Shown: piece after piece, positions 13,206-49,933 of the stretch
How the letters are laid out: every line of letters starts with the position of its first letter
Numbering within the stretch: position 1 is the first letter of the stretch
NCBI GenBank assembly: GCA_977016875.1
Contig: CDRNST010000011.1
Span: forward strand, 806,001 to 870,000
Direction: 5' to 3'
DNA: 64,000 nucleotides
Source of the DNA: Pavona decussata
Taxonomy: Eukaryota
Position numbers and translations under genes: made by a program
Notes under the pieces: model-generated
Seen by the model: only the letters and a program-made list of their open reading frames with translations
Told to the model about the DNA's origin: nothing
Databases searched by the model: none

Positions 13206-14304
13206 TTAAGTTTATACCAGGGACCTACCTGTTTATACGTTTTCTATTTATATATATTTTATTTGTGGCCTTTTCGCTTAAGTCTTACTTTGTATTGACA
13301 TAACCGCGGCCTGGTTTACGATTGATACATACAACTGACTGTAAGCTTATATACATCAATTTCAAACCTTAGTTTTTGAAACAAAGAACAAAGAAAATTG
13401 TGATTTGAAAAATATTTCACTTGTTCGCTGCGCTCACTCGTGAAATATTTTTTCAACACTCGAAGAGAAATTTCGTATCTCCGCGCGGCCATGTAATATC
13501 CTCTATATATACTAAGCTAATATCCGACGTGTACGCGCCCACAAAATTTTCTTCGAAGAAGAAAATTAAGAAGTATTCTAAAGGAAGAGGACAATGACCA
13601 ATGCAAAGTACTTATAAAGACAAGAAGTCGACAAAAAACTTAGCTTCTTTCCGTGAGCTTCTGATTCTTGTGAAATCGCTTTGGAAGGAAAAACGAATTA
13701 CGACCATGATCGCCGCCATCAATGGTCATTATTCAACACAATGTAGCAATGCCCTGGAATATGTTTATGGTGCACTGGATATTCGTCGTCCGTAGTCAAC
13801 AGATATCCTGCGATATACGTAATTTCGTGTGTCGGGAAGGAAAATGGCAAGATGAAGGTCATCTCCAGGTTTCCTAAGTACAATAAAACGGTGCTTTGTT
13901 ATGAATATCTTGAATAATAAAACAATTATCCTGTTCAATCTTGCGGAATATCCCCTGATTTTTGCCCACTCGGCCTATGGCCTCGTTGGCTTAGAGTAAG
14001 GCGATATTCCGCAGGATTTCGCAGGATACTACTCGTTATTCTTCAGAGGAAGTATCTATTGTAATAAGATCAGCTTCGAAACCGAAAACCACATGGTGGA
14101 ATCCTTTTTTGAAACTTAACTGAATATAGATTTGCCTCGAACCTTTGAATTGCGGTGAAATCACTGTCGGTTAAAAGTAACTTAGCAGAGTGTGAGTTAA
14201 GCGACATTCAGATGAATTCTTAAGGACACCATGTATTCGGAGTAAGATAGCACGCAGTTCTCTACTCCCCTTTCAAAGTTCACAATATTATAAACTAAAT
14301 TCAA

Positions 14305-22451: not shown

Positions 22452-24068
22452 ATGGCTGGCAGTACACTGATAGAGGTTTTCAGTCCTATAGTGTTCAGTT
22501 TTACAAGAGGCGTGACAGAGAATTGCAATCCAGAAGAACCTGAATTCACTGAAGAGTTTTTTGGTTACAATCCTCTTGAAAGCACAGGTCGAGAATGGTA
22601 TTATCATCCTGTAGATGAGCTTATTTACCAAGAATACAGCGACAGAGAAGCTGCAAGCTTGGACTATCTAGCATCTAGCTGTCTTAATATAAGAGTTATA
22701 AATGCATGCTCACCAGTTGAAAACAGGGAAGCACTGGACGATAAGCGAGGTGAGGATAATGTCATGGCTTGGAAGCGACATCGACCATCCGCAGTCCGCA
22801 CAGTATGTAAATCGATGTACACTGGAGCTTTGATTTCGATTGTAACTGCTATTCTAGTGGGTTTTTTATATATGCTAGTCTCCTATCTCTCCTATGAAAC
22901 TGTGCACAGTTGTCAGTTCCAGCCCGTTAACACAACTTCAGAACAAACGCAGTGGATAAGAACAATGTCCGGTGTTGCCACTTGTGCTTTACTCTACATC
23001 TGGTTCTTTGCACTTCTGTTCTTTCTCTTTCGCCCATTTCAGTTGAAGGGCGTAAAAGCAAAACTAATCCTGGCGTGTAGCATATTCTATTGCTTGGATT
23101 CACTTTATCGCGTTGCTCTACAGGCCCTTGGAATATCTCATTCCCACATTTCTTACTTGCAAAAGATTCCACTTAACGCTTTGTTTCTTGTTAATCAATG
23201 TCTGCAAGTGTATTTGATAACGAATCACTTGTGCACACGATCAAAACAGAAGCTGACTTTGTTCTTTCAAATGATAGTACCAGGTTGTTTCTGCTTTTTT
23301 ACTTTCTTCATCGTAGCCTCGTTAATTTATCCAGCGTATAACAAACAAGAAAACAAAGACGGCAAACTGTTAATAGCACTGTTCGCTCCCCTTATTGGAG
23401 TCGCATTAAAAGTTATTTCACGAATTTGCGTTCAGCGGTTATGGAACATAACCCATCCGGGATATTCCTATGTCTTATTATCGCCACTGTATTGTGGATC
23501 AGCGGTCGTATTTCGAGTTTTACAAGCGGATCTAGAAAGTTTGAAATCCATTGCTTTTCTTGGAATACTTCATGGCGCTGCAGAAGTCATAGAACGAAGC
23601 ACCATGGTTGTCATTGATCACATTTGTTATGCGTTGTGGAAACGAAAATCAGCTCCTTGGGGAAGTTTTCGTACTCCTCGCCGTGAGAGACTAATGGCTG
23701 ATATCGTCATCATGAGCATGTTGTTTGAATCAACTGCTATTGTGGCTGTTAATGGCTACTTGTATTTGTATCAATTTGTTTACTTGGAAAATAATTCACT
23801 CCTAGTGTTGCTGCAGTCTTTCTCCATTCATGTTTCAGTTCAACTGGGGATTGAGTGGTTTTTCACCAGCATATCTTTAGCAATCGTGACTCGTTACCAG
23901 AATATGGCAGTCATGGCTGTTTGGCGAAGACAATGGAAAAGACACATTTTAGTGGCAATTGTGAATGCGGTACCAATGGCCTTCTGGACTAGCACTAACC
24001 TGTTAGCTGTTGTACATGGGCGGCTCAGCGAAGCATCAAATAAACCCTGCAAGATGCCGTTTACATGA
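22452..24068 (+). CDS. Membrane-protein family copy 5 (538 aa, intact)
   Basis: Full ORF from aaaATGG to ...PCKMPFT*. Confidence 0.93.
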   Translation: MAGSTLIEVFSPIVFSFTRGVTENCNPEEPEFTEEFFGYNPLESTGREWYYHPVDELIYQEYSDREAASLDYLASSCLNIRVINACSPVENREALDDKRGEDNVMAWKRHRPSAVRTVCKSMYTGALISIVTAILVGFLYMLVSYLSYETVHSCQFQPVNTTSEQTQWIRTMSGVATCALLYIWFFALLFFLFRPFQLKGVKAKLILACSIFYCLDSLYRVALQALGISHSHISYLQKIPLNALFLVNQCLQVYLITNHLCTRSKQKLTLFFQMIVPGCFCFFTFFIVASLIYPAYNKQENKDGKLLIALFAPLIGVALKVISRICVQRLWNITHPGYSYVLLSPLYCGSAVVFRVLQADLESLKSIAFLGILHGAAEVIERSTMVVIDHICYALWKRKSAPWGSFRTPRRERLMADIVIMSMLFESTAIVAVNGYLYLYQFVYLENNSLLVLLQSFSIHVSVQLGIEWFFTSISLAIVTRYQNMAVMAVWRRQWKRHILVAIVNAVPMAFWTSTNLLAVVHGRLSEASNKPCKMPFT

Positions 24069-28629: not shown

Positions 28630-30244
28630 ATGAGTAGCAGTACACTGATAGAAGTGTTTGGTCAAATCGTGTTTAGTTTCACACGAGGAGTGACAGAGCA
28701 CTACAATCCAGAAGAACCTGAATTCACTGCAGAGTCTTTTGGATACAATCCTCTAGAAACCACAGGTCGTGAATGGTATTGTCAACCTGTTGATGAGATG
28801 ATTTACCAAGAATACAGCGACAGAGAAGCCACACATTTTGACTATCTTGCGTCAAGGAATCTAGATGTAAGGGTTATAAACGCATGTTCCCCAGAGGAAA
28901 ATGAAGGCTCACACGAAGAAAAGCTCGATGAAGATAGATCCATGGCATGGAAGCGGCTACGACCATCTGTTCTCCACACAGTTTTTAAATCAATGTACAT
29001 TGGAGCTTTGATTTCGCTTGTTACTGCCACCATCATTGGTATAGTATACATGCTAGTCTCTTACGTATCCTATAAGTTTGGACTCGAATGTCAATTTCAT
29101 CCAAGGAAATTGATTCCAAAACAAGTGCAATGGATGAGATGTGTTACAGGCATGATTGCCGCTGCTTTCCTTTACATTTGGTATTTTGTACTTCTTCTAC
29201 TTTCTTTTCGTCCATTTCAATTAATAGGGGTTAAAAGAAAACTGATATTGACCTGCTTCTTTGTTTATTGTTTGGATTCACTGTATCGCGTTGCTCTTCA
29301 AACATTTGGTATATCTTACTCCGTCATCACAGGCTTCCTCAAGGTTCCACTCAACGCTCTCTTCGTTATCAGTATGTCTTGGCAAAGCTATATTGTAACG
29401 AATCACTTGTGCGTACGCTAAAGAAGACAAAAGCTGACGTTTGTCGTTAAATTGATTGTTACAGGTTGTGTTGTTTTCATCGTCTATATCGCCGTAGCTT
29501 TCCTTATTTATCCAGAGTATAACAATCAAACCAAAGAAGGCAAGCTGTTAATCGCACTCTTTGCTCCTCTCATTGGAGTCGTTGTCAAAGTAATCGCAAG
29601 AATTTGTATTCAGCGGTTACATAATGTCACCCATCCAGCATATTCGTATGTCTTGTTGTCGCCGCTGTATTTTGCTTCAGCAGTTATGTTTCGAGTTCTA
29701 CAAGCGGAACTTGACAGTTTGCAATCCATTGCTGTTCTTGGAATAATTCACGGCGCCGCAGGAAGTTTTAGAACGAAGTTCTATGGTTCTAATTGACCAT
29801 GTTTGTCACATGTTATGGAAAAGACGGTCAGCTCCTTGGGGAAGTTTTCGCACTCCTCGCCGTGAGAGACTAGTGGTTGATATTGCTATCATGAGCATGT
29901 TGTCTGAATCAACTGCTGTAGTGGCTGTCAACGAATTTTTATACTTGTTTCAGTTTGTTTACTTGCAAAACAAGTCCTTTTTCGCTTTACTTCAATCACT
30001 TGTCATCTATACCTCAGTTCAGTTGGTGATTGAGTGGTTTTTCACCAGTGTATCTCTAGCGATTGAGACTCGTTACCAGAACATGGCTGTGATGGCTGTT
30101 TGGCGAAGACGATGGAAGAGGCACACTTTAGTAGGCATCGTAAATGCCGTGCCATTGGCTTTGTGGACAAGCATTAATCTTTTAGTAATTGTACACGAAC
30201 GCTTTCCTGGATCAAACCGACCTTGTAAAATGCCGTTTTCTTAA
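28630..30244 (+). pseudogene. Membrane-protein family copy 6 (full length; one nonsense codon, one frameshift)
   Basis: TAA at 29419-29421 where paralogs have TCA. Extra G near 29761 (gcaGgaagt versus gcagaagtc). Otherwise colinear to PCKMPFS*. Confidence 0.9.
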
Positions 30245-30442
30245 GTAAACGTAACAATTACCATTTTCAAACAAACAAACAAACAAACAAAAAAGAAACT
30301 AAAACTAATAAAACCTCAACGAGAGGATTTCCGTAGAAGCTGTTTGCATTAACCGGCCACGGACAGCCGGGTAAAGTAGATGGATGCAGATGTAAGATCC
30401 GGTTCAAACGTCCTGTTCTCGTATCGAACTCAATCAAATTGA

Positions 30443-30672
30443 GAAGGGGGTGAGTTTCCAAAGAAACTGTGGTGCTGCGTCGGTGAGTGGAAACGAATGT
30501 TTGGTTTTATTAACAGAGTTGATAAAGTAATCTGGCCACCGTAAAGAGCTTCGAGTGCTGATGTTTTGTGGTGGATTCGCTCTGGCGAAAGACTAACACT
30601 CGAAACGTCAGCACTCCAATCTCTTTACGGTGGCTAAACTACCTCAGCAACTCTGTTGATAAAACTAAACAT
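30443..30672. mobile_element. Non-autonomous Penelope-like end in foldback arrangement, with a degenerate hammerhead
   Basis: 30443-30566 is an inverted copy relative to 30575-30672. Core ctGGcga-aagactaacactc-GAAACGTC. Homologous to 44786-44932. Confidence 0.7.
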
Positions 30673-33197
30673 GAGGACCTTCGTTAGATCCAGTGGCCGC
30701 ACTCCCAACCTCGCCCATCTTACCCCGCCATCCCGAGCTAGTGTTCACGGCCGTTCGCTTCGATACAGCAACATACCGTGCTTGGTCAATTGCAGGACCG
30801 AACGCTATAGAAAAAGTATTTTCCTTGCACGTATGCTAACGCCCATAGTTTATAATGCTAGGTTTTTTAGACCAGCTTACCTTAAGTGTTCATTAAGATT
30901 TTTTCAAATATTTTTAAGATTACTCTTCTTTTCTAAAAATGCATGACCCAGTCCTCAGACTTTGTAAGTCTTTGGATTCTGGTAATCTTTATTACATATG
31001 TACCTTTCCATATTTGTTTTACTAGTTGAAAGAAAGTCGCAATTCACGTTTTGTAGTGTAATGATTTGGATAATAGACTTATGTTTCAGTATTTATTACT
31101 CGAGATTTTTTTAGCAGAATTAAAAGTGAATTTATCTGACTAGTTGTCAAACATTTTTACTTCAACCGATACTTTTTTCGGTCCTCTGATATTTATATTT
31201 GGTGTCTGTTAGAAGAGCGAAATAAGGACCATTTATGGGAGAGCTTGAACCCAATATCTATAACGACTACACAACAACACTCTTTACCTTCTCACGATCA
31301 GAAATAGTAATTTCCATTATTCATTTTACATTTAATTTTCGCTTATTGAAAAACAAAATACTAGAGTACTGACCGTCGCTGAACTCGAATTTGACACAAG
31401 AACACCGGATAGTCTGGAGCACTATACTCTGCACCATCTGAGTACTGTTGCCGAAGATATATATCCTGATCAGGAATGGATAGATAGTCTTTGCTAACCG
31501 CGATTGTAAAGAATTAAATTGTTGTTTTTGGTGTTGTTTATAATATCAATAGCATTCATTGCCTTTCTGGGCGGATACACCTAACTTGTCCTAAGGTTGT
31601 GATCTCTCGAGTTGGAAATTTAATCGGGATTCCGGATAAGGGAAATTAAAGGAACTTTTAAGTTCCTTTAAAAGTTCCTTTAAACTTTTTTTTAAAAGGA
31701 ACTTATGGAACTTTTAAAATTCTTGAAGTGTTTACCTTTCAGCTCGCCTTACCCCTATAGTTCGGTATTCGCTAACCTGAAACGAAATCAAAATCTTATT
31801 TGGAAACGAGTCACACCAGCCACAGTCCTTACGAGATCATTTGGGAACTCTATCTGATCAAGATTCTTATTTCGTACGAAAACTCATTCTCGTATCTTGT
31901 AAACTCAGTAGATTGTTCCGTTCATCTTCGTTTCCCTCCTGTCCCAAGTTATCTACCTGGCCCCATTAATAATAAACACTATACCAGTTGACCATATTCT
32001 CCTTTCAGCAAGATTTCACATCGATCTGTGCGTGAAAAATGAAGCAGTCCTTACAAAGCCTCTCAATTTTATAACAACTAGTACTTAAATGTCGAGAGAT
32101 TAAACGACAGTTTCCATTCAAGACGAACACAAAATGTCGGAAATAAAATCCAAATACAGTCGAACCTGTATTTAACAACAGATCAAGAGCCCATTTGGAA
32201 CAGTTTGGGTTATAATCTGCTTATGAAACCAGAGCGTGGTTAACCTGCATTCATGGACAAAAGTCTTGGTTTCTGTTTTCTCTATCGTACGTCAAGAGGA
32301 AGTCGTTGTTCCCATACTCCCTCTGCCCCCCCGCCCCTTCCACCCCATTTACAATGTTTCGCTACCCTACTTACGAGCCAACATTGATTTGGGGGGTGAG
32401 GGGGGTGGGGGATGTGGAGGGAGAAAACTTGAGTATAAGTATGAGGAACCTCCAAAACAGGCTTAAAACATCTTCCTGGTGTGAAAGCATAACAACTCAA
32501 CGTGGCGTATTCAGATTAAGATGACAGTTTCAAAATGCCTTGTATCTGGAGCCCTTGAAAACGATCGTTCGTTTCATACGAAGGGCAAAGCTGAATCTTG
32601 ACTGCCAGGTTCATTTATGATGCCATGTATAAAATGAAGAAATCCAGCAGACAATTATAGCATGCTTTTTTTAGGAAGAGCGAACAGGAACGCAGAATGG
32701 GTGTTCCAAGTTTAAAAAAAAAGCGACAAGAAAATGAAACAGTTTACACTCTTTCAGGGTTCAAAGTATAAAAGCTTTTTTTTTTTTCATTTCTAAATTA
32801 ATACTTATAAGAGTTCAAGAATAGATTTCAATATGTGCGAGACTAGCGGCTGCGAATCAAACATGTTCTCAGGAAAGGCATAGCTAACTTAACAGTGAAC
32901 GAGGTTGATACGTTTTCCACCCTTTCGCAGTTATTTTTCAGTTAAGCTATCTACTCGTGGCAGTCAATACAGTAGTAGAAATCAATGAATTGCACTAAGT
33001 CAATAAATAGAATTAAAAACGTAAACACAAAATAAAAGTCTATACTTGTACAAGGTTAATAATTTGGCGCACTGCAATAGCCCAAAAGCTACAGCGACAC
33101 TTCCGGATCGAGAAAGGATAAAAGGGAACATTTTTTGGAAGCCAAGGGCCAAGACTACAAAGCTGCAGTTCTACGATTGTAGAAATGTATTCACAAA

Positions 33198-34778
33198 ATG
33201 AGTAGCAGCACACTGATAGAGTTGCTCAGCCAAATAGCGTTCAGTTTTACACGAAGTGTAACAGAGCACTACAACCCAGAAGAACCTGAATTCACTGCAG
33301 AGTATTTTGGTTACAATCCTCTGGAAAGCACAGGTCGAGAATGGTATTATCATCCTATTGATGAACTTATTTACCAAGAATACAGCGACAGAGAGGCCAC
33401 ATGTTTGGACTATCTAACCTCTAGGCATCTTCATGTAAGGGTTATCGATGCCTGTACACCTGAGGAAAACGAAGGAACTTGGAAACGATTTAGACCGTCC
33501 GTCATTGGTACGGTACGGAAGTCGATGTACACAGGAACTCATATTTCACTTCTAACCGCTTGCTTTGTTGGTATAGTATACATAGTGACTTCTTTTCTCT
33601 GTTACAAAATTGAGCATAACTGTGAATTTCAACCAAAAGAGTTAATTCCAGTACAAGTGCAATGGACGCGAACAATTTCAAGTGTCATTTCCTGTGCCTT
33701 TCTTTACATGTGGTACTTTGCAAATGTGTTATTTCTTTTTCGCCCATTCCAGTTAACTGGGGTTAGAAGGCGACTTATCATTGTGTGTTTCCTGACATAC
33801 TCTTTGGACTCACTGTATCGCGTTGGCCTACAAACATTTGGCACATCTGCCTCCTTCATCTCAGGTTTCCAAAAGATTCCACTTAACGTTCTCTTTCTCA
33901 TCAGTGTATCTTGGCAAGTCTATTTTGTAACGAGTCACTTCTGCATACGGTCAGGAAGAAGAGAAAAGTTCATGTTTTTCTTGCAACTTATAGTTCCAGG
34001 GAGTGTTGTTTTCCTCATTTATATCACGGTAGCATCATTTATTTATCCGGAATATAACAATCAAAACAAGGAACGAAAACTGATAATAGCACTCTTTGCT
34101 CCTCTCATTGGAGTCGTTGTCAAAGTAATCTCAAGAATTTGTGTTCAGCGGTTATATAATGTCACCCATCCAGCATTTTCGTATGTCTTATTGATGCCAC
34201 TGTATTTTGGCTCAGCGGTCATGTTTCGAGTTTTACAAGCGGAACTTGACAGCTTGCAATCCATCGCTATTCTTGGAATAATTCATGGCGCTGCGGAAGT
34301 CATAGAACGAAGCACCATGGTTGTGATTGATCACATTTGTCACACGCTGTGGAAAAGACGATCAGCTCCTTGGGGAAGTTTTCGTACTTCTCGCCGTGAG
34401 AGACTAATGGCTGTTATTGCTATAATGAGCATGTTGTCTGAATCAACTGCAATTGTGGCTGTTAACGGTTTCCTGTACTTGTATCAGTTTGTTTACTTGC
34501 CAAACAAGTCCTTTTTCAATTTGCTACAGTCATTTGCAATTTATACCTCCGTTCAGCTGGTGATTGAGTGGCTTTTCGCTAGCGTATCTCTAGCCATCGA
34601 GACACGTTACCAGAACATGGCTGTCATGGCCGTTTGGCGAAGACGATGGAAAAGACATATTTTAGCTGCCATTGTGAATGCAGTACCATTGGCTACGTGG
34701 AATAGCACTAACCTATTAGTAATTGTACACGGACGCTTTCCTGAAGCCAACAAACCTTGTAAAATGCCGTTTTCGTGA
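33198..34778 (+). CDS. Membrane-protein family copy 7 (526 aa, intact, chimeric)
   Basis: Full ORF. The 5' part resembles copy 8 and the 3' part resembles copy 6. About 10 codons are deleted in the acidic linker. Confidence 0.93.
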   Translation: MSSSTLIELLSQIAFSFTRSVTEHYNPEEPEFTAEYFGYNPLESTGREWYYHPIDELIYQEYSDREATCLDYLTSRHLHVRVIDACTPEENEGTWKRFRPSVIGTVRKSMYTGTHISLLTACFVGIVYIVTSFLCYKIEHNCEFQPKELIPVQVQWTRTISSVISCAFLYMWYFANVLFLFRPFQLTGVRRRLIIVCFLTYSLDSLYRVGLQTFGTSASFISGFQKIPLNVLFLISVSWQVYFVTSHFCIRSGRREKFMFFLQLIVPGSVVFLIYITVASFIYPEYNNQNKERKLIIALFAPLIGVVVKVISRICVQRLYNVTHPAFSYVLLMPLYFGSAVMFRVLQAELDSLQSIAILGIIHGAAEVIERSTMVVIDHICHTLWKRRSAPWGSFRTSRRERLMAVIAIMSMLSESTAIVAVNGFLYLYQFVYLPNKSFFNLLQSFAIYTSVQLVIEWLFASVSLAIETRYQNMAVMAVWRRRWKRHILAAIVNAVPLATWNSTNLLVIVHGRFPEANKPCKMPFS

Positions 34779-34822
34779 ATCAAACATTGTTCAGTCTCAG
34801 AGAAAAACTGGTGAAACAATAT

Positions 34823-35065
34823 TAGAGAGATTAAGCATCGCGTTTACGGCAATTGGCAAACGCCAGGCTGAAATTTTCTCTTTGATGAAAAACAATGAAG
34901 CTTTTTTGGTTTAAGCTTATCTCCACCCAGTAGGCGACAGCTATCGAGCAAACACGAAAAAGAGAGAAGTGAGTACGAGAAATACAAGTTCATGCATTTT
35001 AGAACAAACAGCGGCTTGGCGTTTCCGTTTGGCGTTAGCAGTAAACGCGAAGCTAAATCTCTCTA
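34823..35065. mobile_element. MITE just 3' of copy 7
   Basis: TIRs tagagagattaagcatcgcgtttac / gtaaacgcgaagctaaatctctcta. Confidence 0.75.
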
Positions 35066-35499
35066 ATGCAACGAAAGGTATCGGTGTAAGTTACTTGCAC
35101 TGAGAGTGGGGTAAAGTAGATTTATGAATAACAAGGTCAAAGTTATCTCCCAGCTACTTTGGCAATGAACATGCAGTATCTCCCTCAAAAGCCTCCACGA
35201 GTACAGTATCTTTTCTGAGGCCAGTTTAAAAAACACTTCACACGTGTAGCTCAACATCTAGTCCTTGTTATTGCACGCTCATGCAGAAGTATTTAACGAT
35301 GATTACTAATTTTTTTTGCATTTCTTTATTTAGTTTCTTTTTTGTGTGCACATATAAACCAACGACCCAGCCTGTCAACCACAAAGTTTAATAACTAGAC
35401 CCTTGTAAATTTTTCGACGTTCGGGGCTTGTAGCTAGAGTTACTTCAAATGGGAAAGCACCGTTGACCTGATATATATTTCTCTATATATTATATTTCT

Positions 35500-36604
35500 T
35501 TGTCAGTCTTTGGACATCTATGTAGCGGAACTTAGGCACTGTTACGATATGTTGGTATGTAATAGACAGATATTCTTTGGCAACAGCTTCTTTGCAAAAT
35601 CCAAGCTGCCTCTTCCCATTGCCAGTACGTTTCTTGGAAGATATTCTATGTCTTCTCAAAGGAGAGGAGCCAAAAATTCCTGAATTAAAAAATATATATT
35701 TCAGGGTCTAAAAATACGTCGAGGTCAAAGATGAGCACTGGTTAACCACCAGAGTAAAACTTGACCAGTTAGTATATTTGCCATCTATTCAAAATAAAGC
35801 ATTTTGCATGTTCACAGGTTTTTATTGCACGAAATGTAGGTTTCTGACATAATTTAATTATATTGGGTGATACTTCCATTAATAGGCTACTTGGAGTGTA
35901 CCGGTGGATGGGGTAGTATATTCACAACTGGACTGAATACATTGGGGCTGCATTTTGAATAGAGTTGCTGTAGTGGGGTAAGAATATTCTGACGAGTAAT
36001 TTTTTCTTGGGGTTTGGGTTGAAAGTAGGGACCGTGAACTTGACATTTTCACAAAAGTGACTAAGATGGGGTATATAATTGGCGACGGAATTGAGTATAA
36101 TGGGGTGTTGACCCAAGTAATCCCCTTCGGGCATAATGTCTGTTTTGTTTACTTTGCATAAAATATTATGAATAGTCAGCTGAGATGTAGTCTTCGATTC
36201 AGCAGTAAATGTGGGCGGAAAGCATGTCCGTTTGAAAGCTATATTTTGAGTTATTTTTGAACATCTTTTCATCATTAAACAAAACATCTTTGCTGTCATC
36301 TGCCTACCTGCATTTGAGCTTCGGAGGACTGCGCTTCGTTGTGGAACTGTAATCCCAATCAGGGTTGATGGCCTGCTTCCTGCAGGTTCCACTTCCTACG
36401 GGTTTCACTTGCCTGGAAAATAAGATATAACGAAATAAACATCAAATTTTCAAGGATGGAGAAGCTTAAGTTGCCAGAGCTTACCCTGTTTTTACATTTC
36501 GTCTGATTGCAACGACAACTCGGGCGGAGCAATCCATGTTCGCCCCTTTGCACAAACAGTGCCCTCGTCCACGCTTCTTAGCACATGCTCCTTTACATGG
36601 GCAT
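35500..36604 (-). pseudogene. Decayed spliced gene with an N-terminal CXC-like cysteine cluster
   Basis: Across frameshifts: PCKGACAKKRGRGHCLCKGANMDCS / SCRCNQTKCKNR, then a gtaag donor near 36484. Downstream relic NVLAMGRGSLDFAKKLL. Confidence 0.5.
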
Positions 36605-37669
36605 GTTACTTATGTTGACCTGTCTCTGGCGTTCTATTGAGACGAAAATGGTAAAGTACAAGCAAAACGTTTTACGCAAAAACGTCTGAAACAAATATTC
36701 TGTTCGATCAACGATAGACCCGTAAGCATTTACTTCCTGAGGTGATCCTGGTTCAAATAATTCATCTACTTCCTTTACTTGTGCTTTCAATCAAAATACC
36801 CGGGCTTTCACTCCGCAAATTCGTTTGCGCAGCGACCAGGCAAGAACACGGCGGAAATCTCTTGTCTGGGTTTGGGAAATGCCCGATAAAAATAGTTGAC
36901 CAATGAGTGTGTGCCATTTAACAATAGCAGGATTTCAAAACAAAAATAAACGCCCGCAAAGGCTGCGGGTTTCCGCCACTTGACATGGCTTTAATGGAAA
37001 TATCGCGCTCGCGTTTCAAGCAATGCTGAAACCCTATCATCATATCATGAATCTGTATTGTGGGGTATTTTGTGAATTTTTGGGTGATTTTTGGGTATAT
37101 TTGGGAGGAGTAGTTTTTGCTAGAAAGATTGGTAAAATTAAAAGAAATAAGAAATTTTGGAGATTTAGTGAAGTTTTAAAATTGGAATTTGAAGTAAATA
37201 ATTAATACACGGATACCAAGTTAGTCCACCAGCAACCTGGGGTGCTCTTGCGTGGGTATCAATTGTCTGTTAGTGTTCCAAAAATCATTTTCTTTCATCT
37301 ATCCCTTCTTAAAACCTCTTCAAATTTCATTCAAATTTAGGTGTTTTGCTTCCTTAAGTGAATGTGGTATAGGATTTCCATCTCGTACAGGAATGAATTC
37401 AAAGCTTTGGACTGTAGCAAGGGTCTACCATGTGAACATGTAGATACTCACAGAAATTTTTTTTTCCCTGAACAGTCACGAGAACAGAGAATCAGTTACT
37501 CAACTGAATGGAACGTTTGCTTGAATTTCGACTCCAAAATGAATTCACAGCTGAAAGCTAGGACATCCAGTTAGAAGATACACTGATTAAAATTTACTGC
37601 TGAATGTGGGTGTATCAAAAAGTGAAAATTAATACTGGAAAGTCTTCAACGCAGTGGTTTGGTAGGTAA

Positions 37670-38152
37670 CTAAAGGTAAGGTAACGTCGTACTGCGAGCC
37701 TAAGTGGCCCACAGGGCCGGAGGTTAAAAATAAATAAATCACTTTATTTAAGTGTCAATGAGTGTCGATGTATTTAGGGCAGAGAACTAGTTGGGGACAT
37801 TTTCCAGATCGAATTGGAATTTAGAAGTGTTGGTTTTTGAGGAGAAGGGAAAACAGAAGTACCCGGAGAGAATCCTCACGGATCAAGGCCACGAACCAAC
37901 CGGTTAACCCGGTTTCAATAGCATGGGGGAAAAAAGAAGAGTACTTGTGCTCATCCTTGGATGAGACGCTAGTCCATCGCATTATGTCAGCGGTATACAC
38001 CCGGGTGAAGAGAGGCAATGTGGAAGAAAGTTTCTTATCTAAAGAAACAACACAGAAATGAAGACACCAACCTAGCCTAGAACCACCGACCCTCCAATCT
38101 TCCGACCATCCCATCGAAAGTCCAACGCGCTTACAACTACACCACTGCGCAT
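37670..38152 (-). mobile_element. Cluster of tRNA-derived SINE fragments
   Basis: The minus strand from 38152 starts with a tRNA-like head (cagtggtgtagttgtaagcgcgttggact...ggttctaggc), then a SINE-like core tgcctctcttcacccgggtgtata...gcgatggactagc. Other SINE-like tails lie at 37670-37895. Confidence 0.6.
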
Positions 38153-38299
38153 ACACAGAGGTTTGGTAGACAACCATTTCAAATAGTTTTAAAATTGCAT
38201 ACTTAGGAAAAAATGGAAACATACGAGTGGATTACCAACAGATCAAGAGTCAATTTTGGATCGGTTTGGGAATTGATCTGGGCTTTAAACAAGAGCGTG

Positions 38300-39420
38300 G
38301 TTAAAATCTTCATTCAGAGCCAAAAGCCTTGGGACAAGCTCCATTTTTTGTTATCTCTATTCTTACGTGTGGGGGAATCATTGTTCCCGTACCTCCCTCC
38401 CCTGCTTAAACCCATTTGCGTGGGAGGGGGGAGGGGGGTTGGTGAGAGAATACTTGAGCACAAATATAAAGAACCTACAAAAAAGCTCAATTCATCCTTC
38501 TGGTCTAAAAGCAAGACAACTAAACATCATGTATTCAGATGACCGTTTTAAAATTTCATGATGCCAGATATAAAATAAAGAAATCCAGTAGACAATAATA
38601 GCACGCTATTTCTAGGAGGAGAAATCATATAAAATTCCTAATTTAAAACAGCTACAACAAAATGAAACAGTTTACACTCTTTCGGGCTTATATTTATAAA
38701 AGCATAAATTGGTCATTTCTAAATTTACACTAACAAGGGCACAAGAATAGAATCCCAACTGGTGCGGGACAACTGGCTGCGAATCAAAGGTGTTGTTCAT
38801 AGAAAAAAATATGGCTAACTTAACAACACGAGATCGATACGTTTTTCGAAAGCCCTTTCCAGAAATCATTGTTCCCGTACCTCCATCCTCTCCTTAAATC
38901 CATTTGCAATGCTGAGTTTATTACACCAGGAGACTATTTACAAGCCTCCCGTGGTAGGGGGAGGAGGGGGGGGAGAGAAAACTTACTTTTTCTGGCCCAA
39001 GAGCAAGACAACTAAATGTCGAGTATTCAGATGAACGTTTTTAAAATTTCTTGTATCTGCAGCACCTGAAGCTTTAAAACGAATGATCTTTTCACTGGAA
39101 GGCAAACGCTGAATCAAAACCACAAGCCCTTTAAAAAGAGCTATAGCAAACCATTCATGATACCACATATCAAATAAAGAAATCCTGTCGACAACAAAAG
39201 CACGCTATTTCTAGCAAGAGCTAACATGTACGCAGACCAGTCAGAGTATGCTGCGTGTTCAAAATAAGCTACGAGAAAATGAAACAGTTTACGTTCTTTC
39301 AGCGATATAAAAGTACAATAATAGTTCTCAATACGTGTTGCGCTTTCCTAAAAATCAAACCAGCTGTTTACAGGAAGAGCATAGCTAACTCCTAACCACG
39401 ATGTTGATACGTTTTGCGGA
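38300..39420 (+). repeat. Imperfect tandem duplication upstream of copy 8; a single homolog lies upstream of copy 7 (32160-33197)
   Basis: Shared anchors aatcattgttcccgtacctcc (38376, 38864), aaatgaaacagtttac (32732, 38660, 39277) and gctaact. Confidence 0.85.
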
Positions 39421-39914
39421 AACTCTTGCTCCCCTTTCGGGAATAAGGCAACCTAATGTTCTCAATTGTTTGTTCCTTTCTACTCTTGGCTGGGAAGGCA
39501 GTATTGTATCCGGTTGGAATGAATGAATGAATGATAAAGACAAAGATTTAAACAGGATGTTAGCTGGTCATCAGCACATACAGATGAAGCAGAGTTAATT
39601 TAATACATACTTACTTTTGTCACACTGTAATATTTTATTTTACTCTAAGACACTAGCCCGTAGAACTACTTCAGATTCCAGTTTAAATAAAGAATTTTAG
39701 GACGATATGATGATGATGATGATTGATAAGATGAGGAAAACCTACACACAAAATAAAATGTCTTTGCTTGTACCAAGTTAATGTATGCGCACTACAAAAG
39801 CAATACCGAAAAAGCAATATTATGCTTCAGCGATATTTCCGGAGCAAGAACGGATAAAAGGTAAGTTTTTTTGGAGGCCAGGACTACAAAGCTGGAAGTG
39901 CCAGGTTCGTTCAA

Positions 39915-41525
39915 ATGAGTAGCAGTACACTGATAGAGGTGTTTGGTCACGTCGTGTTCAGTTTTACAAGAGGCGTGACAGAGCACTACAACCCAGAAGA
40001 ACCTGAATTCACTGCAGAGTCTTTTGGATACAATCCACTGAATAGCACAGGCCGAGAATGGTATTACCGTCCTGCTGATGAACTTATTTACCAAGAATAC
40101 AGCGACAGAGAGGCCACATGTTTGGACTATCTAACTTCTAGGCATCTTCATGTAAGGGTTATTGATGCGTGCACACTCGAGGAAAACGAAGAAACCCCGG
40201 ATGATCAGAAAGATGAAGATAGAGCCATGGCGTGGAAGCGATTTAGACCGTCCGCTATCCGAACAGTGTGTAAATCGTTGTACATGGGAGCTCTGATTTC
40301 ACTTCTAACCGCTTGCTTTGTTGGTACAGTATACATAGTGACTTCTTTCCTCTGTTACAAAATTGAGCATAACTGTGAATTTCAACCAAAAGAGTTAATT
40401 CCGTTACAAGTGCAATGGCTGAGAACAATTTCAAGTGTCATTTCCTGTGCCTTTCTTTACATTTGGTACTTTGCAAATATTTTATTTCTTTTTCGCCCAT
40501 TCCAGTTAACTGGGGTGAGAGGACGACTTCTTTTGCTGTGTTTCCTGACATACTGTTTGGACACTCTTTATCGTGTTTCTTTACAACTCCTTGGAATATC
40601 TCACTCCAAGATTTCTAATAAGGATCCACTCAATGCCCTTTTTCTAATAAGTGTGTGTTTGCAAGTCTACATTATCACGAATCACTTCTGCCCTCGGTCA
40701 ACAAAACAGAAGTTGACGCTGTTCTTCCAAATGATCGTACCAGGCTGTTTACCTCTCATTGTCGGTAGCTTAATAGCCGGAAATCTTTATCCTGTTTACA
40801 GCGAAGAAAATAAAGAAGGCAAACTACTAATCGCCATATTTTCTCCTCTCATTGCCGTCATCTTCAAAGCAATCACCCGAATTTGTGTTCAGCGGTTATA
40901 TAACATTACTCATCCAGCATATTCTTACGTTTTGTTGGCTCCACTGTATATCGGTTCAGCGGTTGTATTTAGGGTTTTACAAGCGGAACTTGACAGCTTA
41001 AGATCCATCGCTATTCTTGGAATAATTCACGGCGCTGCAGAAGTCGTAGAACGAAGCACAATGGTTTTGATTGATCACGCCTGTCACACTCTACGGAAAA
41101 GACGATCAGCTCCTTGGGGAAGTTTTCGTACTCCTCGCCGTGAGAGACTAATGGCTGATATCGCCATTATGAGCATGTTGTCTGAATCAACTGCAATTGT
41201 GGCTGTTAACGGTTACTTATACTTGTATCAACTTATTTACCTACAAAACAGTTCCCTTCAAACTTTAATACAGTCTTTTGCCGTCCATGTTTCAGTTCAG
41301 CTAGTCATTGAGTGGTTTTTCACAAGCCTTTCTCTAGGCATTGAGACTCACTTTCAGAATATGGCTGTCATGGCTGTTTGGCGAAGACAGTGGAAAAGAC
41401 ACATATTAGTTGCAGTTGTAAATGCAGTTCCATTAGCTATCTGGACTAGTAATACCCTGTTTGAAGTTGTCGGTGAACGCTTTCGTGAGTCCTTAAAGCA
41501 GACTTGCGAAATGCCCTTCACCTGA
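39915..41525 (+). CDS. Membrane-protein family copy 8 (536 aa, intact)
   Basis: Full ORF ending TCEMPFT*. Confidence 0.93.
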   Translation: MSSSTLIEVFGHVVFSFTRGVTEHYNPEEPEFTAESFGYNPLNSTGREWYYRPADELIYQEYSDREATCLDYLTSRHLHVRVIDACTLEENEETPDDQKDEDRAMAWKRFRPSAIRTVCKSLYMGALISLLTACFVGTVYIVTSFLCYKIEHNCEFQPKELIPLQVQWLRTISSVISCAFLYIWYFANILFLFRPFQLTGVRGRLLLLCFLTYCLDTLYRVSLQLLGISHSKISNKDPLNALFLISVCLQVYIITNHFCPRSTKQKLTLFFQMIVPGCLPLIVGSLIAGNLYPVYSEENKEGKLLIAIFSPLIAVIFKAITRICVQRLYNITHPAYSYVLLAPLYIGSAVVFRVLQAELDSLRSIAILGIIHGAAEVVERSTMVLIDHACHTLRKRRSAPWGSFRTPRRERLMADIAIMSMLSESTAIVAVNGYLYLYQLIYLQNSSLQTLIQSFAVHVSVQLVIEWFFTSLSLGIETHFQNMAVMAVWRRQWKRHILVAVVNAVPLAIWTSNTLFEVVGERFRESLKQTCEMPFT

Positions 41526-43154: not shown

Positions 43155-44785
43155 CTGTAGAGGCCCGCAAATGATCCCCGGACGGGAAATGATCCCCAGA
43201 TGATCCCCGATCGCCTCATCATAAATATAGAATGGAATGGACTCAAATTTGGACAGTGGATTTCAACTTTATACACAACAATTTTTTTTCTTAATAACAC
43301 TAGTCGTTATATTTAAACAATTTAAACTATCTTATATTATATTAAATATATTAAACTATCTGTATGCAAATTTCACAACTTTAAAAATTATAATGTAGCA
43401 GCTCAGTGCAAGAAAACAATTTAGTTTTAAACTGGAACATACATGCCTGTGTACATTATTTACGTACACCATTACAACGCCTAAAATGTACTCGAATTGT
43501 ACGAAATTTTTCATCAGTTTTCAAATAGGGCGAACAATACGAAACAAATTTTGACAGTGCAACTCAAAAGTGCTTAATTGGAACAGGCCAACTTACTCGA
43601 ATGGGAAAGCCTCTTCAGAGAGTACCACAATTCCGCACGCACTGATGTAGTGAGCTTTCTCCGAAGAAACCCAGCCACTCCCATCCCGAACGCATTCACT
43701 TTAGAGAATTCGTGAATCATAGTGGGTGGAAGACGCACCCTCGACGGATGTCCCCGGATTACTCGCGAGTGAGGTGATTATGTTGCCTTATCAGGTCTGG
43801 TGAACATTTTCGAAATTCCGGTTGCAGAAGGCTTATCTTTAATCTACCCAAGTAACCATAGACAAGAAGAAGCTGATTTCGACAGCATTCCTTTGGTGAG
43901 CCATGAAGCCCATCAAAGCAACTTCCATAGCCTTCAGCAAGTGGACACAAAAATAACAGATGTCAGTCGAAGAATTAAAATTGAAGTATGGAGAAGGGCG
44001 AATTACTGAAGATCAAATTTGCCTAAAATGCAGAAAAAATTGACAGCTATTCCCTAGGCGTCTATGAGGGGACAATGGTCTTCTTCAGATCCAAGCCGAC
44101 GACAGTATGTTTTGTAAAAAAAATATATATATATTAAAGAAAGACTGGGAGTCCAATCAGCGGCAAAACGAAAACGAAAGACAAAATCAACATATTACAC
44201 GATAACGTATTGGACGACCGAGGCTAAAAAGTTATGCTTAAGACTAAGATCCGATTAAGAACAAAGGCGACGATAATGGGCGAGATTTGACCGCCATCTG
44301 AGGCGCATTGACCGATTCTCCTTCCTTTTTCGAAAAACAAAAAACAAAACAAAAAAAAATCTAGCAAAAGTCCGACCCGCTCTTTAATTTTTTTTAATTT
44401 GGAAGAGTTTCGTACAATTCTTGCCCATTTTAGGCATTGTAATGGTACAAGTAAATCATATACATGCATGTTACAGTTTATAGGTAAATTGTTCTGTTGT
44501 ACTGTGCTGCTATATTATAATTTTTAAAGATGTGAAATTTGCATGCAGATAGTTTAAACATAACGACTAGTGTTATTAAGAAAAAAAATTGTTGTGTATA
44601 AAGTTGATATCCACTGTCCAAATCTGAGTCCATTCCATTCTATATTTATGATGAGGCGATTGGGGATCATTTGCGGTCCAATCTGGGGATCATTTCCCGT
44701 CCGGGGATCATTTGCGGTTTAATTTTGGGACCATTTCCGGTCCGGGGATCATTTGCGGGCCGGGATCGTTTGCGTGCCTGTACAG
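43155..44785. mobile_element. Non-autonomous DNA transposon, probably CMC/EnSpm-like
   Basis: ~350-bp imperfect TIRs (CTGTA...TACAG), subterminal aaatgatcccc repeats, 2-bp TSD CT. The superfamily is inferred. Confidence 0.8.
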
Positions 44786-44885
44786 CTCTGATGATGGACT
44801 AACGTTCGAAACGTCCGTTACAGAATCAGTTTACGGTGGCAAATTACCTTATCAACTCAGTTGATAAAACCACACGTTTCCACTC

Positions 44886-44932: not shown

Positions 44933-45753
44933 TGCCTTGTTTGCAAACCATTTTTAACTGAACAAAAATTTCGGCATAACTGTCACTGCATAACAGTATG
45001 CAGGACACATGTCACATACGAGCCTACCCTTTTCCCGTGACGTAACATACAACGAACGCTCAAGAAAGCTGAATCTACATCCCTTGTGCTATTGGCACGA
45101 GGACGTGGACAAAATGTTCTTTTTTTAAGCCGTTTAAAGGTTTAATTGATATATCCTTCTGTGGTACCAGCAATCCGTAACACAAGCAGATTTACTCGCT
45201 TAAGCGTAAATTCAAGCTTTCCACAGTCTACTGCTTGTAAATGTAAGACTGACAACCTTCCAGAAATCATCTTTTTGAAATAGATATAAAAGAGCTACAA
45301 GGACTTAGAACACTTTGGTTTATTAATTTAATATTAATTTTGACGAAATAGTCTGCTCTTCTCAATTATTTTCATGATGCTAGCGCTTAAACTATCAACA
45401 ATGATCCTGAAAATCCATGCTCGTTAAAAACCATTTGCCTACTGGTGGTAACATCATTCGCAGTCTAACTATTGCTTCCTGTTTTTGATTTAACGTACTT
45501 TCTGTATTTTACGCACTTTTTTAATGTGGCTAAATGTAATTTAGGCAAAGTTAAAATCGAGGCAAGTGCTGGTCAGCGGTGCCCGCATGGCTGGGAGATG
45601 CGGGGCCGCCACCCTACTTTTCAGGGGCGCCTGGGTTCTTACAGCTCACATGTTTGTGCCAATTCATTTCGCATCTGTTCGCTTGCCGGAGCTTGTGCTG
45701 TTTAAGTTTGTTGCTGTTTTTTCGTCCAGTTTTTCTCTTTTTACGTCTTCGTT

Positions 45754-46987
45754 ATGTCCCGAAACACCCACAATAGTTTACAGGCTCGGCTTTTCGCTGG
45801 CGACGCGTCATCTACGGCGGATGGTTCGTCGAGTATTCAATGTGAAAGTTCGCCTGCTGTTGAGACGTCTCGGCCTTCCACGCCTGCTAGTACGACTTTG
45901 GCGGCTTCAGCGGCGCCCACTTTATCGCCCGAGATGATTTCACTGATTACGCAAACGGTTCGAGCGGCCATGGCGGCCGAAAAAAATTCCTGCATCTGAA
46001 CAAGTGCAAGCGGTACCGAGTGCTGTACCGACCGCGAGTACTGGGGGCGTTCCTGCCTCAAATTCCTTAGATGCTTCGGCTGCGAGTTTCTTGGCATCGG
46101 GCGGTGCAATTCCTCTTGGACAGCCGTTACAAGGTAGGCCATCTTCTTGTGTTGTTGTCCCTTCGTTTGTGCAAACGTTCGCTGCGCCCGTCATGTCGCT
46201 TGCACCTTCGTTTACTCCGCCAAGCAATGTAATTCAACAGGCTCCGGCGCTCGCCACTCAACCCGCTTCGCTCCTGGATCAGTCGTTCGTGGTCGGGCCA
46301 GGTTTTTCTCCTGTTCCAGCGAAGCTCGTGGCTCAGATCGTGGGCGGCAAATACGTGGATTTAAGTGATCTCCTGGCCCCCAACCTGCAACAACGAGAGC
46401 CCGAACCGCAACTTATGTTTGATGGCCGACTCGTTTTGACGTCGCAACCAAAACGGCAGCGCCGTCGCATCGAGGACATTGCTAGCTGGATGGAAGCGTT
46501 TTCCATCTTTTCACTCGTACTATCTTCCAACTTTCCCCACCGTTGGAAAGATTTAACTCAATACCAGCTCCTCATTTTGCGCACACATCGCCATTTTAGC
46601 GGTAAGGTGTGGCTGAACTATGACCGAGCGTTCCGTGAACATGCGGCTGCGACAAAGTTGACCGATTGGTCTTGCATGAACGTGCAGCTGTTTAACTTCC
46701 ACGCAGCTGGCTCGTCGTCCCGCGGATCGTCATATGCCCAACCAGCTGAGGCTTCTGAGCCCTCCGGTTCCTCGTTTTCAAGTACGCTGTGCAAGTCATG
46801 GAACAGGGGGCGGTGCACGGCTCCAGTCAACCCCTGTCGCTACGCGCATCGCTGCAGTCTGTGCTCAGGTTCTCACCGGGCTATCACGTGCCATGATCGC
46901 GCCGAGAAAGCTGATCGAGGGGATGCCAAGCGTCGCGGCAGCTCGCCCACCCCTAGCCATGCTTCAAGCAAGGCCCGGCGTGATTAA
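45754..46987 (+). CDS. Ngaro gag-like ORF1 (one extra A in the run at 45980-45986)
   Basis: Removing one A joins ORF 45754 to ORF 46004. Motifs GKYVDLSDLL, WMEAF, WLNYDRAFR and the Cys/His finger CKSWNRGRC..CRYAHRCSLCSGSH....C. Confidence 0.85.
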
Positions 46988-47367
46988 TGTACTGTTGTAG
47001 CTTTGCAATTTTTTTTTCTTGCCCCAGTTTTTTCCGCGCCGCTCTGCTTTATTAATGTTGTTTCTCCAGTGGCAGGGGCCTTTTTGTATGCCACCATGGC
47101 AGTTCACTTCGATTTTAGGTTACTTGCTTCGTATTGCTTGATTTTTCACCATCTCGCTAGTTACATGTGTCTCCTACTTGTATTTCGATAGAGCCAACAT
47201 TCGCAACTGTGCTTTTGGCCTTTAGGGCCTTTGTTGGGCATCTGTACCTCATTGTATAGGGTGATTGCCAATAAAAGTTTTTTTATTTTTGGCTATTTTA
47301 TCTGTATATACCTATCTTTTTCTCGTTGGGGTTGCGTCTCCTAAGCATGTGCATTTTTTCCTTCTAG

Positions 47368-48986
47368 TGCCTTTGTGCTTCCCGCCTATCACGGTTATAA
47401 GTCCTTTGAATGTCTCAGAGTTTGCTCGGGAGTTGACAGCTCACCCCCAGCCACAGCAGGTGTCTTACGTCCTCAATGGCCTCCGGAACGGCTTTAGACT
47501 AGGGTTCCGGCCCCTTCGGAAGCTGTCCTCTGCCCGAAAGAACAAACTTTCAGCGTTCCAGCACCCAAAAATTATAGATGACTACTTGGCCAATGAGGTT
47601 GCCTTTCATAGGGTAGCGGGCCCCTTTTCACATCCCCCCTTCCCTAATTTGCATGTAAGCAGTTTTGGAGTTATCCCCAAGAAGGGCCAACCTGGGAAAT
47701 GGCGCTTAATTGTGGACCTATCGTCTCCGAGCGGCAGTAGTGTTAACGATGGCATTGACCCAGAGGAATTTGCTATGCATTACGTTAAAGTGGATCAAAT
47801 AATTCAAATGGTGGCTAAGTACGGCCCGGGAGCCATGATGGCGAAATTTGACGTTGAGGCCGCTTATCGCAACATTGCTATCCACCCAGCTGATCGTTAC
47901 CTACTAGGCCTGAAGTGGTGAGGGCAATATTACGTGGACTTAACCCTGCCTTTCGGCCTTCGCTCGGCTCCCTACATCTTTAGCGCAGTAGCGGACATGG
48001 TGGAATGGATCCTACTGAATTCACATGGCGTTTCAGATCTAATGCATTACCTGGATGACTTTATTACCGCCGGCCCCCCAGGGGCACAGCAGTGCGCCTT
48101 TAACTTACGTACGGCCTTATCCGTCTGTGGATCGCTTGGCTTACCGCTTCACCCAGGCAAATGCGTGGGTCCCGCCACTCGCATGGTGGTGTTGGGTATT
48201 GAGCTCGATTCAGAACAGCAGGCTGCTAGGCTACCAGCAGAGAAGCTGGAGGCCCTAAGAGAGCTGATTCATGCCTGGCGGTCCCGCAGATGGTGTACCA
48301 GGCGCCAGTTAGAGTCCCTCATAGGCCATCTACACCATGCCGCCAAAGTTGTTTGGCCAGGCCGCACCTTCTTGAGGCGCATGATTGACCTTCTTTGCTG
48401 CTTCCGCAAACGCGATCACCCAATTAGGCTAAACACGGAATTCCATCTAGATCTCCTTTGGTGGCACGAATTCCTTTCCGCTTGGCATGGAGTCAGCTTT
48501 TGGCTTTTCCCCGGGCTTTCAGCCGCTACGGACGTGGAAGTCACCTCAGACGCTGCTGGATCCCTCGGTTATGGGGCTTACCTTGGGAATGAGTGGTTCA
48601 GTGGCGCTTGGGGCCCATCCCAGGTCCCAGAGTCCATTGCGTACAAAGAGCTGTTTCCTGTGGTTGTCTCATCGTGCGTCTGGGGCCACCAATGGTTCAG
48701 GAAACACGTTCTGTTTCGGTCCGACAATGAGGCAGTGGTTTTCATCCTCCAGTCCAGGACCTCTAAGATCCCCGCGCTTATGCGGCTTTTGCGTAAGCTG
48801 CTTTCATCAGTGGCCCGTTTCAATTTTACCTTTACCTCGCAACACGTTCCCGGCATTCATAACCACATTGCTGACGCCCTTTCTCGCTTTCGTTGGCAGG
48901 AGTTCAGACGGTTAGCTCCACAGGCCTCGCTGTCTCCAGTTCCAATCCCGCAAAGCCTACTGGACGAATTGACCCTTCCAGCCTAG
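47368..48986 (+). CDS. Ngaro pol (RT + RNase H) with in-frame TGA at 47919-47921
   Basis: GKWRLIVDLS, KFDVEAAY, LPFGLRSAP, YLDD; RNase H SDA, KEL, SDN, NHIADALSR. Both ORF-track pieces are in the same frame. Confidence 0.92.
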
Positions 48987-49933
48987 AAGACCAGTGCCGT
49001 GAGTTCCTGATTAAGGGCCTGGCTTCATCTACCCGAAACTCCTACGCTTCAGGACAGAGAAAGTTTTACGACTTCTGCCATCAGTTGGGCAAGATTCACT
49101 CATCTGGCTCTCCCTGCCCAGCTGATGAGTGGACCCTGTGCTTGTTTGCCACGTTCCTGGCCAGGTCAGTACAGCACACCACCATTAAGGTTTACCTATC
49201 TGCAGTGCGGTCCTTGCACATCGAACAAGGCTTTCCAGATCCTCTCCTCAACTGTTTGCGACTCCAACGGGTTTTGCGGGGAATCAAGCGATCCCAAGGT
49301 GGCCCCTCCACTTCTCGGTTACCGATCACAGATCACATCATGCTGGTCATCTTTAAGTCGTTGGACCTGAGCATTCCAGACCACTGCATGTTTTGGGCCG
49401 CTTGCAATTTGGCCTATTTTGGCTTTCTCCGTTCTGCAGAGTTCACAGTTCCGAACCTTTCCAGTTTTTCCCTCGACACCCATCTGGGGGTGCCCGATAT
49501 CGCGTTTGACTCGGTGGTTGCTCCCACCTGCCTGAGGGTTAGGATAAAAGCGTCCAAGACCGACCCATTCCGAAAGGGGTGCTTTCTACACATTGGTCGA
49601 GGCTCCTATCCTTTGTGTGCCATCCGAGCATTGGTGGCGTACCTAGCTATCCGGGGAGGTGCACAGGACCCTCTATTTTTACTTTGCGATGGTCGTCCCT
49701 TGTCCCGGGTCCTTTTGACCGACTGGCTTCGCCGCATATTGTCATCCTCGGGAGTCCAAGGCAACTTTTCCAGCCACAGTTTCCGCATCGGCGCTGCCAC
49801 GGTCGCAGCACGAAATGGGGTCCCGGATCATCTCATTCAGGCTCTGGGCCGTTGGTCAAGCAATGCCTATCAATTGTACATCAGAACTCCAACAGAGTCG
49901 TTAGCTACGCTGTCTAAGCAGCTCGCAAGTTAA
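48893..49933 (+). CDS. Ngaro tyrosine recombinase
   Basis: Catalytic residues FLRSAE, KASKTD, HSFRIGAAT, GRWSS, YQLYIR. Overlaps the end of pol. Confidence 0.95.
   Translation: MAGVQTVSSTGLAVSSSNPAKPTGRIDPSSLEDQCREFLIKGLASSTRNSYASGQRKFYDFCHQLGKIHSSGSPCPADEWTLCLFATFLARSVQHTTIKVYLSAVRSLHIEQGFPDPLLNCLRLQRVLRGIKRSQGGPSTSRLPITDHIMLVIFKSLDLSIPDHCMFWAACNLAYFGFLRSAEFTVPNLSSFSLDTHLGVPDIAFDSVVAPTCLRVRIKASKTDPFRKGCFLHIGRGSYPLCAIRALVAYLAIRGGAQDPLFLLCDGRPLSRVLLTDWLRRILSSSGVQGNFSSHSFRIGAATVAARNGVPDHLIQALGRWSSNAYQLYIRTPTESLATLSKQLAS

Follow-up and report, generated by a model that had tools for sequence, protein, structure and literature searches.

The DNA analyzed here, which we refer to as the window, is a 64,000-nucleotide stretch of the genome of the coral Pavona decussata (contig CDRNST010000011.1, hereafter C11, positions 806001-870000, within a 602-Mb assembly). 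A tblastn search located eight copies of a single intronless gene, approximately 538 codons long, in the window. Three of them, copies 6, 7, and 8, are neighbors (Table 1), and an earlier note on this DNA, made from its letters alone, had proposed that copy 7 is an anti-Lepore-type chimera of the other two, resembling copy 8 at its front and copy 6 at its back. We confirm that copy 7 is a real, clean two-part mosaic of this composition. In what follows, A denotes the copy-6 type and B the copy-8 type.

The two-part structure was evident from every comparison that we made along the gene. In sliding windows, the identity of copy 7 to copy 8 is 76-95% between 33445 and 33802, as against 60-68% to copy 6; from 33803 onward the relation is reversed, with 76-91% to copy 6 and 61-75% to copy 8, except in a block that is conserved across the family (34250-34500). 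When the 30 best paralogs from the whole genome were compared, copy 8 and its two close duplicates came out nearest to 33445-33806, at 87-89% against 69% for the next best, and copy 6 came out nearest to 33807-34250 plus 34501-34778, at 83% against 76-79%. Trees built separately on either side of the breakpoint, an approach that the earlier note had suggested, differ in topology with full support: the tree of 33198-33806 joins copy 7 to copy 8 and its two close duplicates (support 100/100), and the tree of 33807-34778 joins it to copy 6 (100/99). Approximately unbiased (AU) tests agree and reject the swapped topologies, with p values of 1.1e-4 on the left and 3.7e-7 on the right. Since copy 6 is sister to the copy-2 clade in both trees, copy 7 and not copy 6 is the recombinant. 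The peptide motifs quoted in support of the chimera were also found in the translations of the open reading frames.

To place the junction, we used the 233 sites that carry a fixed difference between the copy-6 clade and the copy-8 clade. Copy 7 has the copy-8 state at 81 of the 84 such sites left of the junction and the copy-6 state at 112 of the 149 to its right; the final copy-8-type site is 33800 and the initial copy-6-type site is 33810 (maximum chi-square 110), which refines the breakpoint from the approximate 33803-33809 of the earlier note to 33801-33809. The equivalent positions are 29269-29277 in copy 6 and 40554-40562 in copy 8. The copy-8-type sites right of the junction are either private changes of the copy-6 lineage or scattered, so there is one junction only. 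It lies inside a conserved island of about 30 bp (33797-33826), which encodes a near-invariant LDSLYRV around residue 203, and the structural model and the alignment together place it in a predicted helix (residues 190-213) between two variable segments, residues 121-200 and 221-290. The chimera had been said to combine variable loops anew; the variable segments are indeed recombined, but they are mostly predicted to be helices with short loops.

Table 1. Gene copies, flanks, and parts of the hybrid gene in the window
Feature	Position	Strand	Description
Copy 6	28630-30244	+	A-type parent lineage; broken, a pseudogene in the window
X	30245-32171	+	copy 6 3' flank; blocks collinear with the copy 7 3' flank
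Y7	32172-33197	+	copy 7 upstream flank; paralogous to the copy 8 upstream flank
Copy 7	33198-34778	+	hybrid with B-type front and A-type back; intact
Copy 7, copy-8-type part	33198-33800	+	codons 1-201
In-register junction interval	33801-33809	+	9 bases
Copy 7, copy-6-type part	33810-34778	+	to the stop codon
Z	34779-37360	+	copy 7 3' flank; blocks homologous to X; two young insertions
Y8	37361-39914	+	copy 8 upstream flank; paralogous to Y7
Copy 8	39915-41525	+	B-type parent lineage; intact
Copy 1			fragment
Copy 2	4907-6523	-	
Copies 3 and 4			pseudogenes
Copy 5	22452-24068		

Flanks and the duplicated unit

The relationships of the two halves extend into the DNA on either side of the gene. 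Upstream, blastn aligned 32172-33165 with 38232-39894 at 71-74% identity (E values down to 3e-42), which bears out the homology of about 1 kb that had been noted before copies 7 and 8. For comparison, we used two other coral assemblies from the European Nucleotide Archive, ERZ26692694 (spA; contig L047) and ERZ26692669 (spB; contigs L048 and L050). With the orthologs from these genomes added, the homology between Y7 and Y8 extends over at least 1.5 kb upstream, and comparison with the related genomes also revealed a deletion in the window at 32172. Y8 carries an internal duplication, as 38555-38845 and 39152-39415 each match 32612-32916.

Downstream, the 3' flanks of copies 6 and 7 had been described as not visibly similar, and plain blastn within the window indeed gave no match between them. 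This caveat was overturned when we built a profile of the copy 6 flank from the three genomes, which detected collinear blocks in the copy 7 flank of every genome. The X blocks at 30291-30386, 31475-31536, 31762-31827, and 31881-31937 match positions 25-885 of the spB copy 7 flank with 69-75% identity (E values of 1e-4 to 5e-9), and the Z blocks at 35069-35126 and 35531-35603 are homologous to X. Overall, the collinear blocks of X and Z are about 65-75% identical, were found only with profiles and orthologs, and coincide with none of the multi-copy repeats detected in either flank. The homology is hidden in this genome because a young miniature inverted-repeat transposable element (MITE; 34821-35067), 247 bp long and with terminal inverted repeats of 42 nt, lies 42 bp beyond the copy 7 stop codon. 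The MITE is absent from this site in spB; the genome has 334 candidate matches to it, and the 40 full-length ones that were scored are 92-96% identical. Z also contains a repeat of about 390 bp that resembles a short interspersed nuclear element (36970-37358), all 38 scored copies of which elsewhere are 90-94% identical, and X contains a palindromic repeat of about 240 bp (30430-30672) with many copies at 73-80%.

Taken as a whole, the stretch from about 29270 to 33805 (copy 6 back, X, Y7, and copy 7 front) is collinear with that from about 33806 to 40558 (copy 7 back, Z, Y8, and copy 8 front), with 84% identity between the back halves and 89% between the front halves. This tandem unit is exactly what unequal exchange between adjacent genes predicts. 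The order of A, B-front/A-back, and B, which the earlier note had attributed to unequal crossover, holds as well, with all three copies on the plus strand and the halves assigned by the trees. Copy 7 therefore has the order, the single junction, and both of the flanks that structurally define an anti-Lepore-type hybrid.

The arrangement is not that of a bounded interlocus gene conversion tract, for which we found neither a 5' boundary nor recipient-type upstream DNA. Instead, the copy-8-like sequence runs through at least 1-1.5 kb of upstream flank and then straight into the homology between X and Z. In none of the three genomes did we find remnants of copy-6-type upstream sequence ahead of copy 7, which counts against an earlier whole-gene duplicate of A, since such a duplicate would have left some. 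Two other candidate origins were rejected. A duplicate of copy 8 whose back half was converted from copy 6 does not fit a copy 7 3' flank that matches the flank of copy 6 and not that of copy 8, and an origin as a retrocopy or from a chimeric transcript does not fit the lack of a poly-A stretch after the stop codon or homology that goes on for over 1 kb upstream and also enters the 3' flank.

Orthologous hybrids and the fate of the genes

We found the hybrid in both of the other coral assemblies. Contig L047 of spA carries a copy 6 ortholog followed by a copy 7 ortholog, and contigs L048 and L050 of spB carry the same hybrid with the same junction, L050 also having a downstream copy 8 ortholog; on all three contigs, the hybrid adjoins a copy 6 ortholog. 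In both the left and the right tree, the copy 7 orthologs group together as a single clade with a stem of 0.05 substitutions per site. The sister of this clade is the copy-8 type in the left tree (100/100) and the set of copy 6 orthologs in the right tree (100/99). The hybrid thus predates the splits of the three genomes, and the present copies 6 and 8 are descendants of the parents and not the parents themselves. At synonymous sites, spA has diverged from the window by about 0.22 and spB by about 0.10. We infer that the exchange is about twice as deep as the deepest of these splits, with a synonymous divergence of roughly 0.4-0.5.

The region downstream of the hybrid differs in spA. In L047:11740-21440, there is no copy 8 gene within 8 kb after copy 7; partial homology to Z and Y8 is followed by a copy-2/3-like gene on the opposite strand, which indicates that the array has been rearranged there.

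The earlier note had also stated that the chimera stayed intact while its parent, copy 6, decayed. This holds for the genome of the window, where copy 6 is interrupted by an in-frame stop codon (29419-29421) and by an insertion of 1 bp near 29760, but not everywhere, as copy 7 is broken on both spB contigs, in one by an 8.4-kb insertion at the equivalent of window position 34547 (L048:11386-19815) and in the other by a 2-bp insertion. The copy 6 orthologs carry other lesions, namely a different in-frame stop in spA and a 4-bp insertion in spB, and their ratio of nonsynonymous to synonymous divergence (dN/dS) is 0.21-0.49. Together, these findings point to independent and late decay of copy 6. 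Copy 7 is intact in the window and in spA, and the dN/dS of its orthologs is 0.12-0.33, values at which copy 7 appears to have been kept under purifying selection in two of the three genomes. The window copy is 12 codons shorter than all three of its orthologs owing to an in-frame deletion of 36 bp near 33477, which falls in the first variable segment.

Origin of the hybrid

We propose that copy 7 probably originated in one homology-guided unequal exchange between adjacent and already diverged genes, A (now copy 6) and B (now copy 8). Such an exchange would have duplicated in tandem a unit of about 4.5 kb, consisting of the back of A, the spacer, and the front of B, and would have produced the order of A, B-front/A-back, and B, the two parts of the hybrid meeting at a single in-register junction, which sits in a short island of conservation flanked by variable segments. 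The resulting hybrid would pair a B-type upstream region and first variable segment with an A-type second variable segment. Afterwards, the copy-8-type fronts may have kept swapping sequence, which would make the 85 codons adjacent to the junction appear young, and copy 6 would have decayed separately in each genome while copy 7 stayed selected in two of the three.

Two sets of observations weigh against this proposal, the first of which concerns the amount of homology at the junction. The A and B types are 66-68% identical around the junction and 73-87% identical in the island of about 30 bp, and the extended stretch of high identity between the parents that would be expected at an exchange point is absent. 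The parents were less diverged at the time of the exchange than they are today, yet clearly distinct, and the identity of A and B at the junction is far below what a classical meiotic crossover needs. Given this low identity, the exchange would have been guided by very short homology. A replicative template switch at short homology may be the real mechanism, and it fits the junction as well as a meiotic crossover does.

The second set concerns age, as the copy-6 side of the hybrid looks about 1.4 times older than the copy-8 side. Synonymous divergence (dS) between copy 7 and the copy-8 type left of the junction is 0.33 (95% confidence interval 0.25-0.44), and that between copy 7 and copy 6 on the right is 0.46 (0.37-0.58); the one-sided bootstrap p value for the difference is 0.03, or 0.14 after scaling to the divergence of the orthologs. 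The flanks behave similarly, with a distance (K) of about 0.30 between Y7 and Y8, aligned over nearly their full length (about 950 columns), and of 0.39-0.47 between X and Z, where few blocks are alignable. Within the front half, codons 1-82 do not discriminate, all types being at about 0.45, and in the 85 codons directly left of the junction (codons 119-203, 33552-33806) copy 7 is separated from the copy-8 type by a dS of just 0.12-0.20. These young codons suggest later homogenization between copies 7 and 8, and such front exchange stops at the junction because homology drops there. The most economical account would be one exchange at a dS of roughly 0.4-0.5, followed by continued exchange between copy-8-type fronts.

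A recent event of this kind is present in spB. On L050, a 12-kb contig with half coverage, the copy 8 ortholog is itself a second and recent hybrid (L050:3753-4900): its own first 426 bp are left as a stranded fragment, which is followed by 140 bp of copy 7 upstream DNA and about 400 bp of copy 7 coding sequence, after which copy 8 resumes in register. The patch derived from copy 7 is 99-100% identical to the neighboring copy 7, and this exchange of a 5' end indicates that such events recur between these two genes.

The difference in age could instead reflect a two-step origin, which we consider possible but rather unlikely. An older whole duplicate of the copy-6 type, including its 3' flank, would in that case have been overwritten later from the copy-8 lineage across its first 600 bp and a further 1-1.5 kb or more upstream, either by long-tract gene conversion or by break-induced copying begun in the conserved island. 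The greater divergence of the A side, at synonymous sites as well as in the flanks, and the low dS of the block at 33552-33806 would both follow, and the patch replacement on L050, where copy 7 sequence replaced a copy 8 front with one non-homologous junction, is comparable. However, such copying would need to continue for more than 1 kb through upstream DNA lacking homology to the recipient, and every trace of the upstream region that the recipient originally had would need to be gone, precisely as far as the end of X. Moreover, the difference in age is only marginally significant and is explained equally well by homogenization after a single exchange, and two events are invoked where one is enough. 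Two events would also be needed if the A-B pair had been duplicated as a unit and a Lepore-type deletion had then fused the first B with the second A. The final layout would be formally identical to the one observed, and nothing would tie the deletion to a particular time after the duplication, but this course predicts equal ages just as a single exchange does and so explains nothing more, and we found no remnant of the deleted genes; we regard it as very unlikely. Finally, there is hardly any chance that copy 7 reflects an assembly join of two paralogs or convergent selection on segments of the protein. The hybrid is not an assembly artifact, a possibility that the earlier note had raised against itself, as two further, independent assemblies of related corals have the same junction on three contigs; the mosaic signal is also found at synonymous sites and in the non-coding flanks.

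A broader conjecture can be framed, although we think it quite unlikely to be correct: conserved nucleotide islands between the variable segments might be preferred in-register exchange points, at which neighboring genes repeatedly swap front modules made up of the upstream region and the first variable segment. The array would then diversify by cassette shuffling and not by point mutation alone, and its first examples would be the two front-end exchanges that occurred independently in this gene pair in two genomes.

The protein family, its neighborhood, and known hybrid genes

Copies 6 to 8 belong to a large, coral-restricted, intronless membrane-protein family without annotation. The Pavona genome contains at least 80 family matches spread over several arrays, with the locus of copies 6, 7, and 8 present once in the assembly, and a protein search scored more than 1,100 homologs among its top candidates. 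The best named relatives are "uncharacterized protein" entries of the stony coral Oculina patagonica (about 65-71% identity). Neither copies 7 and 8 nor 48 homologs matched any family in Pfam-A, a sequence-profile search of the PDB gave no match to a solved structure, and our literature searches found no paper on this protein family. The AlphaFold2 model has a mean predicted local distance difference test score (pLDDT) of 70 and a predicted template-modeling score (pTM) of 0.71; the first 100 residues or so are poorly predicted, and ten or eleven long helices come after them. When compared with structures in the PDB by Foldseek, the model received no assignment (template-modeling [TM] scores of 0.1-0.25), and VIA-align returned only helical designs or generic helical matches (Z up to 10). 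In the ESM Atlas, the model matched one unnamed eukaryote cluster (TM 0.54-0.62), and the Atlas feature matches are cnidarian hypothetical proteins.

Other copies of the surrounding DNA were seen elsewhere in the genome. The window from 34819 to at least 62505 has a segmental duplicate 141 kb upstream on the same contig (C11:698878-719132, 86-97% identity), which holds a second intact copy-8-type gene (L002) without a copy 7. The left boundary of this duplicate falls at the left end of the MITE (34821-35067), and the duplicate lacks the sequence corresponding to 43157-44787 and 45521-50420. Since this duplicate begins 41 bp past the copy 7 stop codon, we considered whether the end of the gene could be the boundary of a mobile unit, and rejected this because the point is the end of a high-copy MITE. 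The second of the missing intervals, 45521-50420, is a G+C-rich element earlier labeled as a Ngaro retrotransposon; because the orthologous contig L050 does not have it either, it is a young insertion. Another contig (C56:5632491-5646954) carries a third copy-8-type gene (92% identical) beside a copy-3-like gene on the opposite strand. Its homology to copy 8 begins exactly at the ATG, and in L049 the DNA upstream of it instead matches window positions 14059-14288, which suggests an exchange bounded by the coding sequence.

The hemoglobin anti-Lepore gene, which has a beta front and a delta back and lies between the delta and beta genes, is the duplication product of unequal crossing over. Like it, the coral hybrid is flanked by both parental types in one orientation and has one in-register junction, and the DNA on each side of it derives from the parent located on the opposite side, the upstream flank from the downstream parent and vice versa. 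Unlike hemoglobin anti-Lepore, which is a rare human allele, the coral hybrid is fixed, old, and common to three coral genomes; its parents are about 70% identical at the exchange point, as against about 93% for delta and beta, its halves appear unequally old, and it is not known to have a reciprocal deletion allele. Hybrid genes formed by non-allelic homologous recombination (NAHR) in tandem arrays are also familiar from the red and green opsins, CYP11B1/B2, KIR, and the glycophorins. There, too, exchange between neighboring paralogs creates new combinations of variable segments, and later conversion blurs their ages. Those genes, on the other hand, have known functions and highly similar repeats, whereas the coral family is intronless and cnidarian and its island of exchange is very short.

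In corals, phased Acropora assemblies have led to NAHR being invoked for tandem gene expansions (PMC12314368), and the parts of that study considered here describe gain and loss of whole genes, often with transposons as the substrates. Our locus agrees with that model, as far as those parts set it out, in that coral tandem arrays grow by unequal exchange and some copies become pseudogenes. It differs in having an intragenic hybrid junction resolved to the base, which we did not find for this family in the same parts of the study.

As a mechanism, the exchange adds nothing beyond what is established for globins, opsins, and immune receptor arrays, and the kind of event is textbook. What this locus contributes beside those systems is a clean, base-resolved, and datable hybrid gene in an unannotated family of coral membrane proteins, in an array that grows and diversifies by exchange between neighbors in addition to whole-gene duplication. 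It also amounts to a natural experiment in which the same back half is joined to two different fronts and upstream regions, which would be useful once a function or an expression pattern is known for the family.

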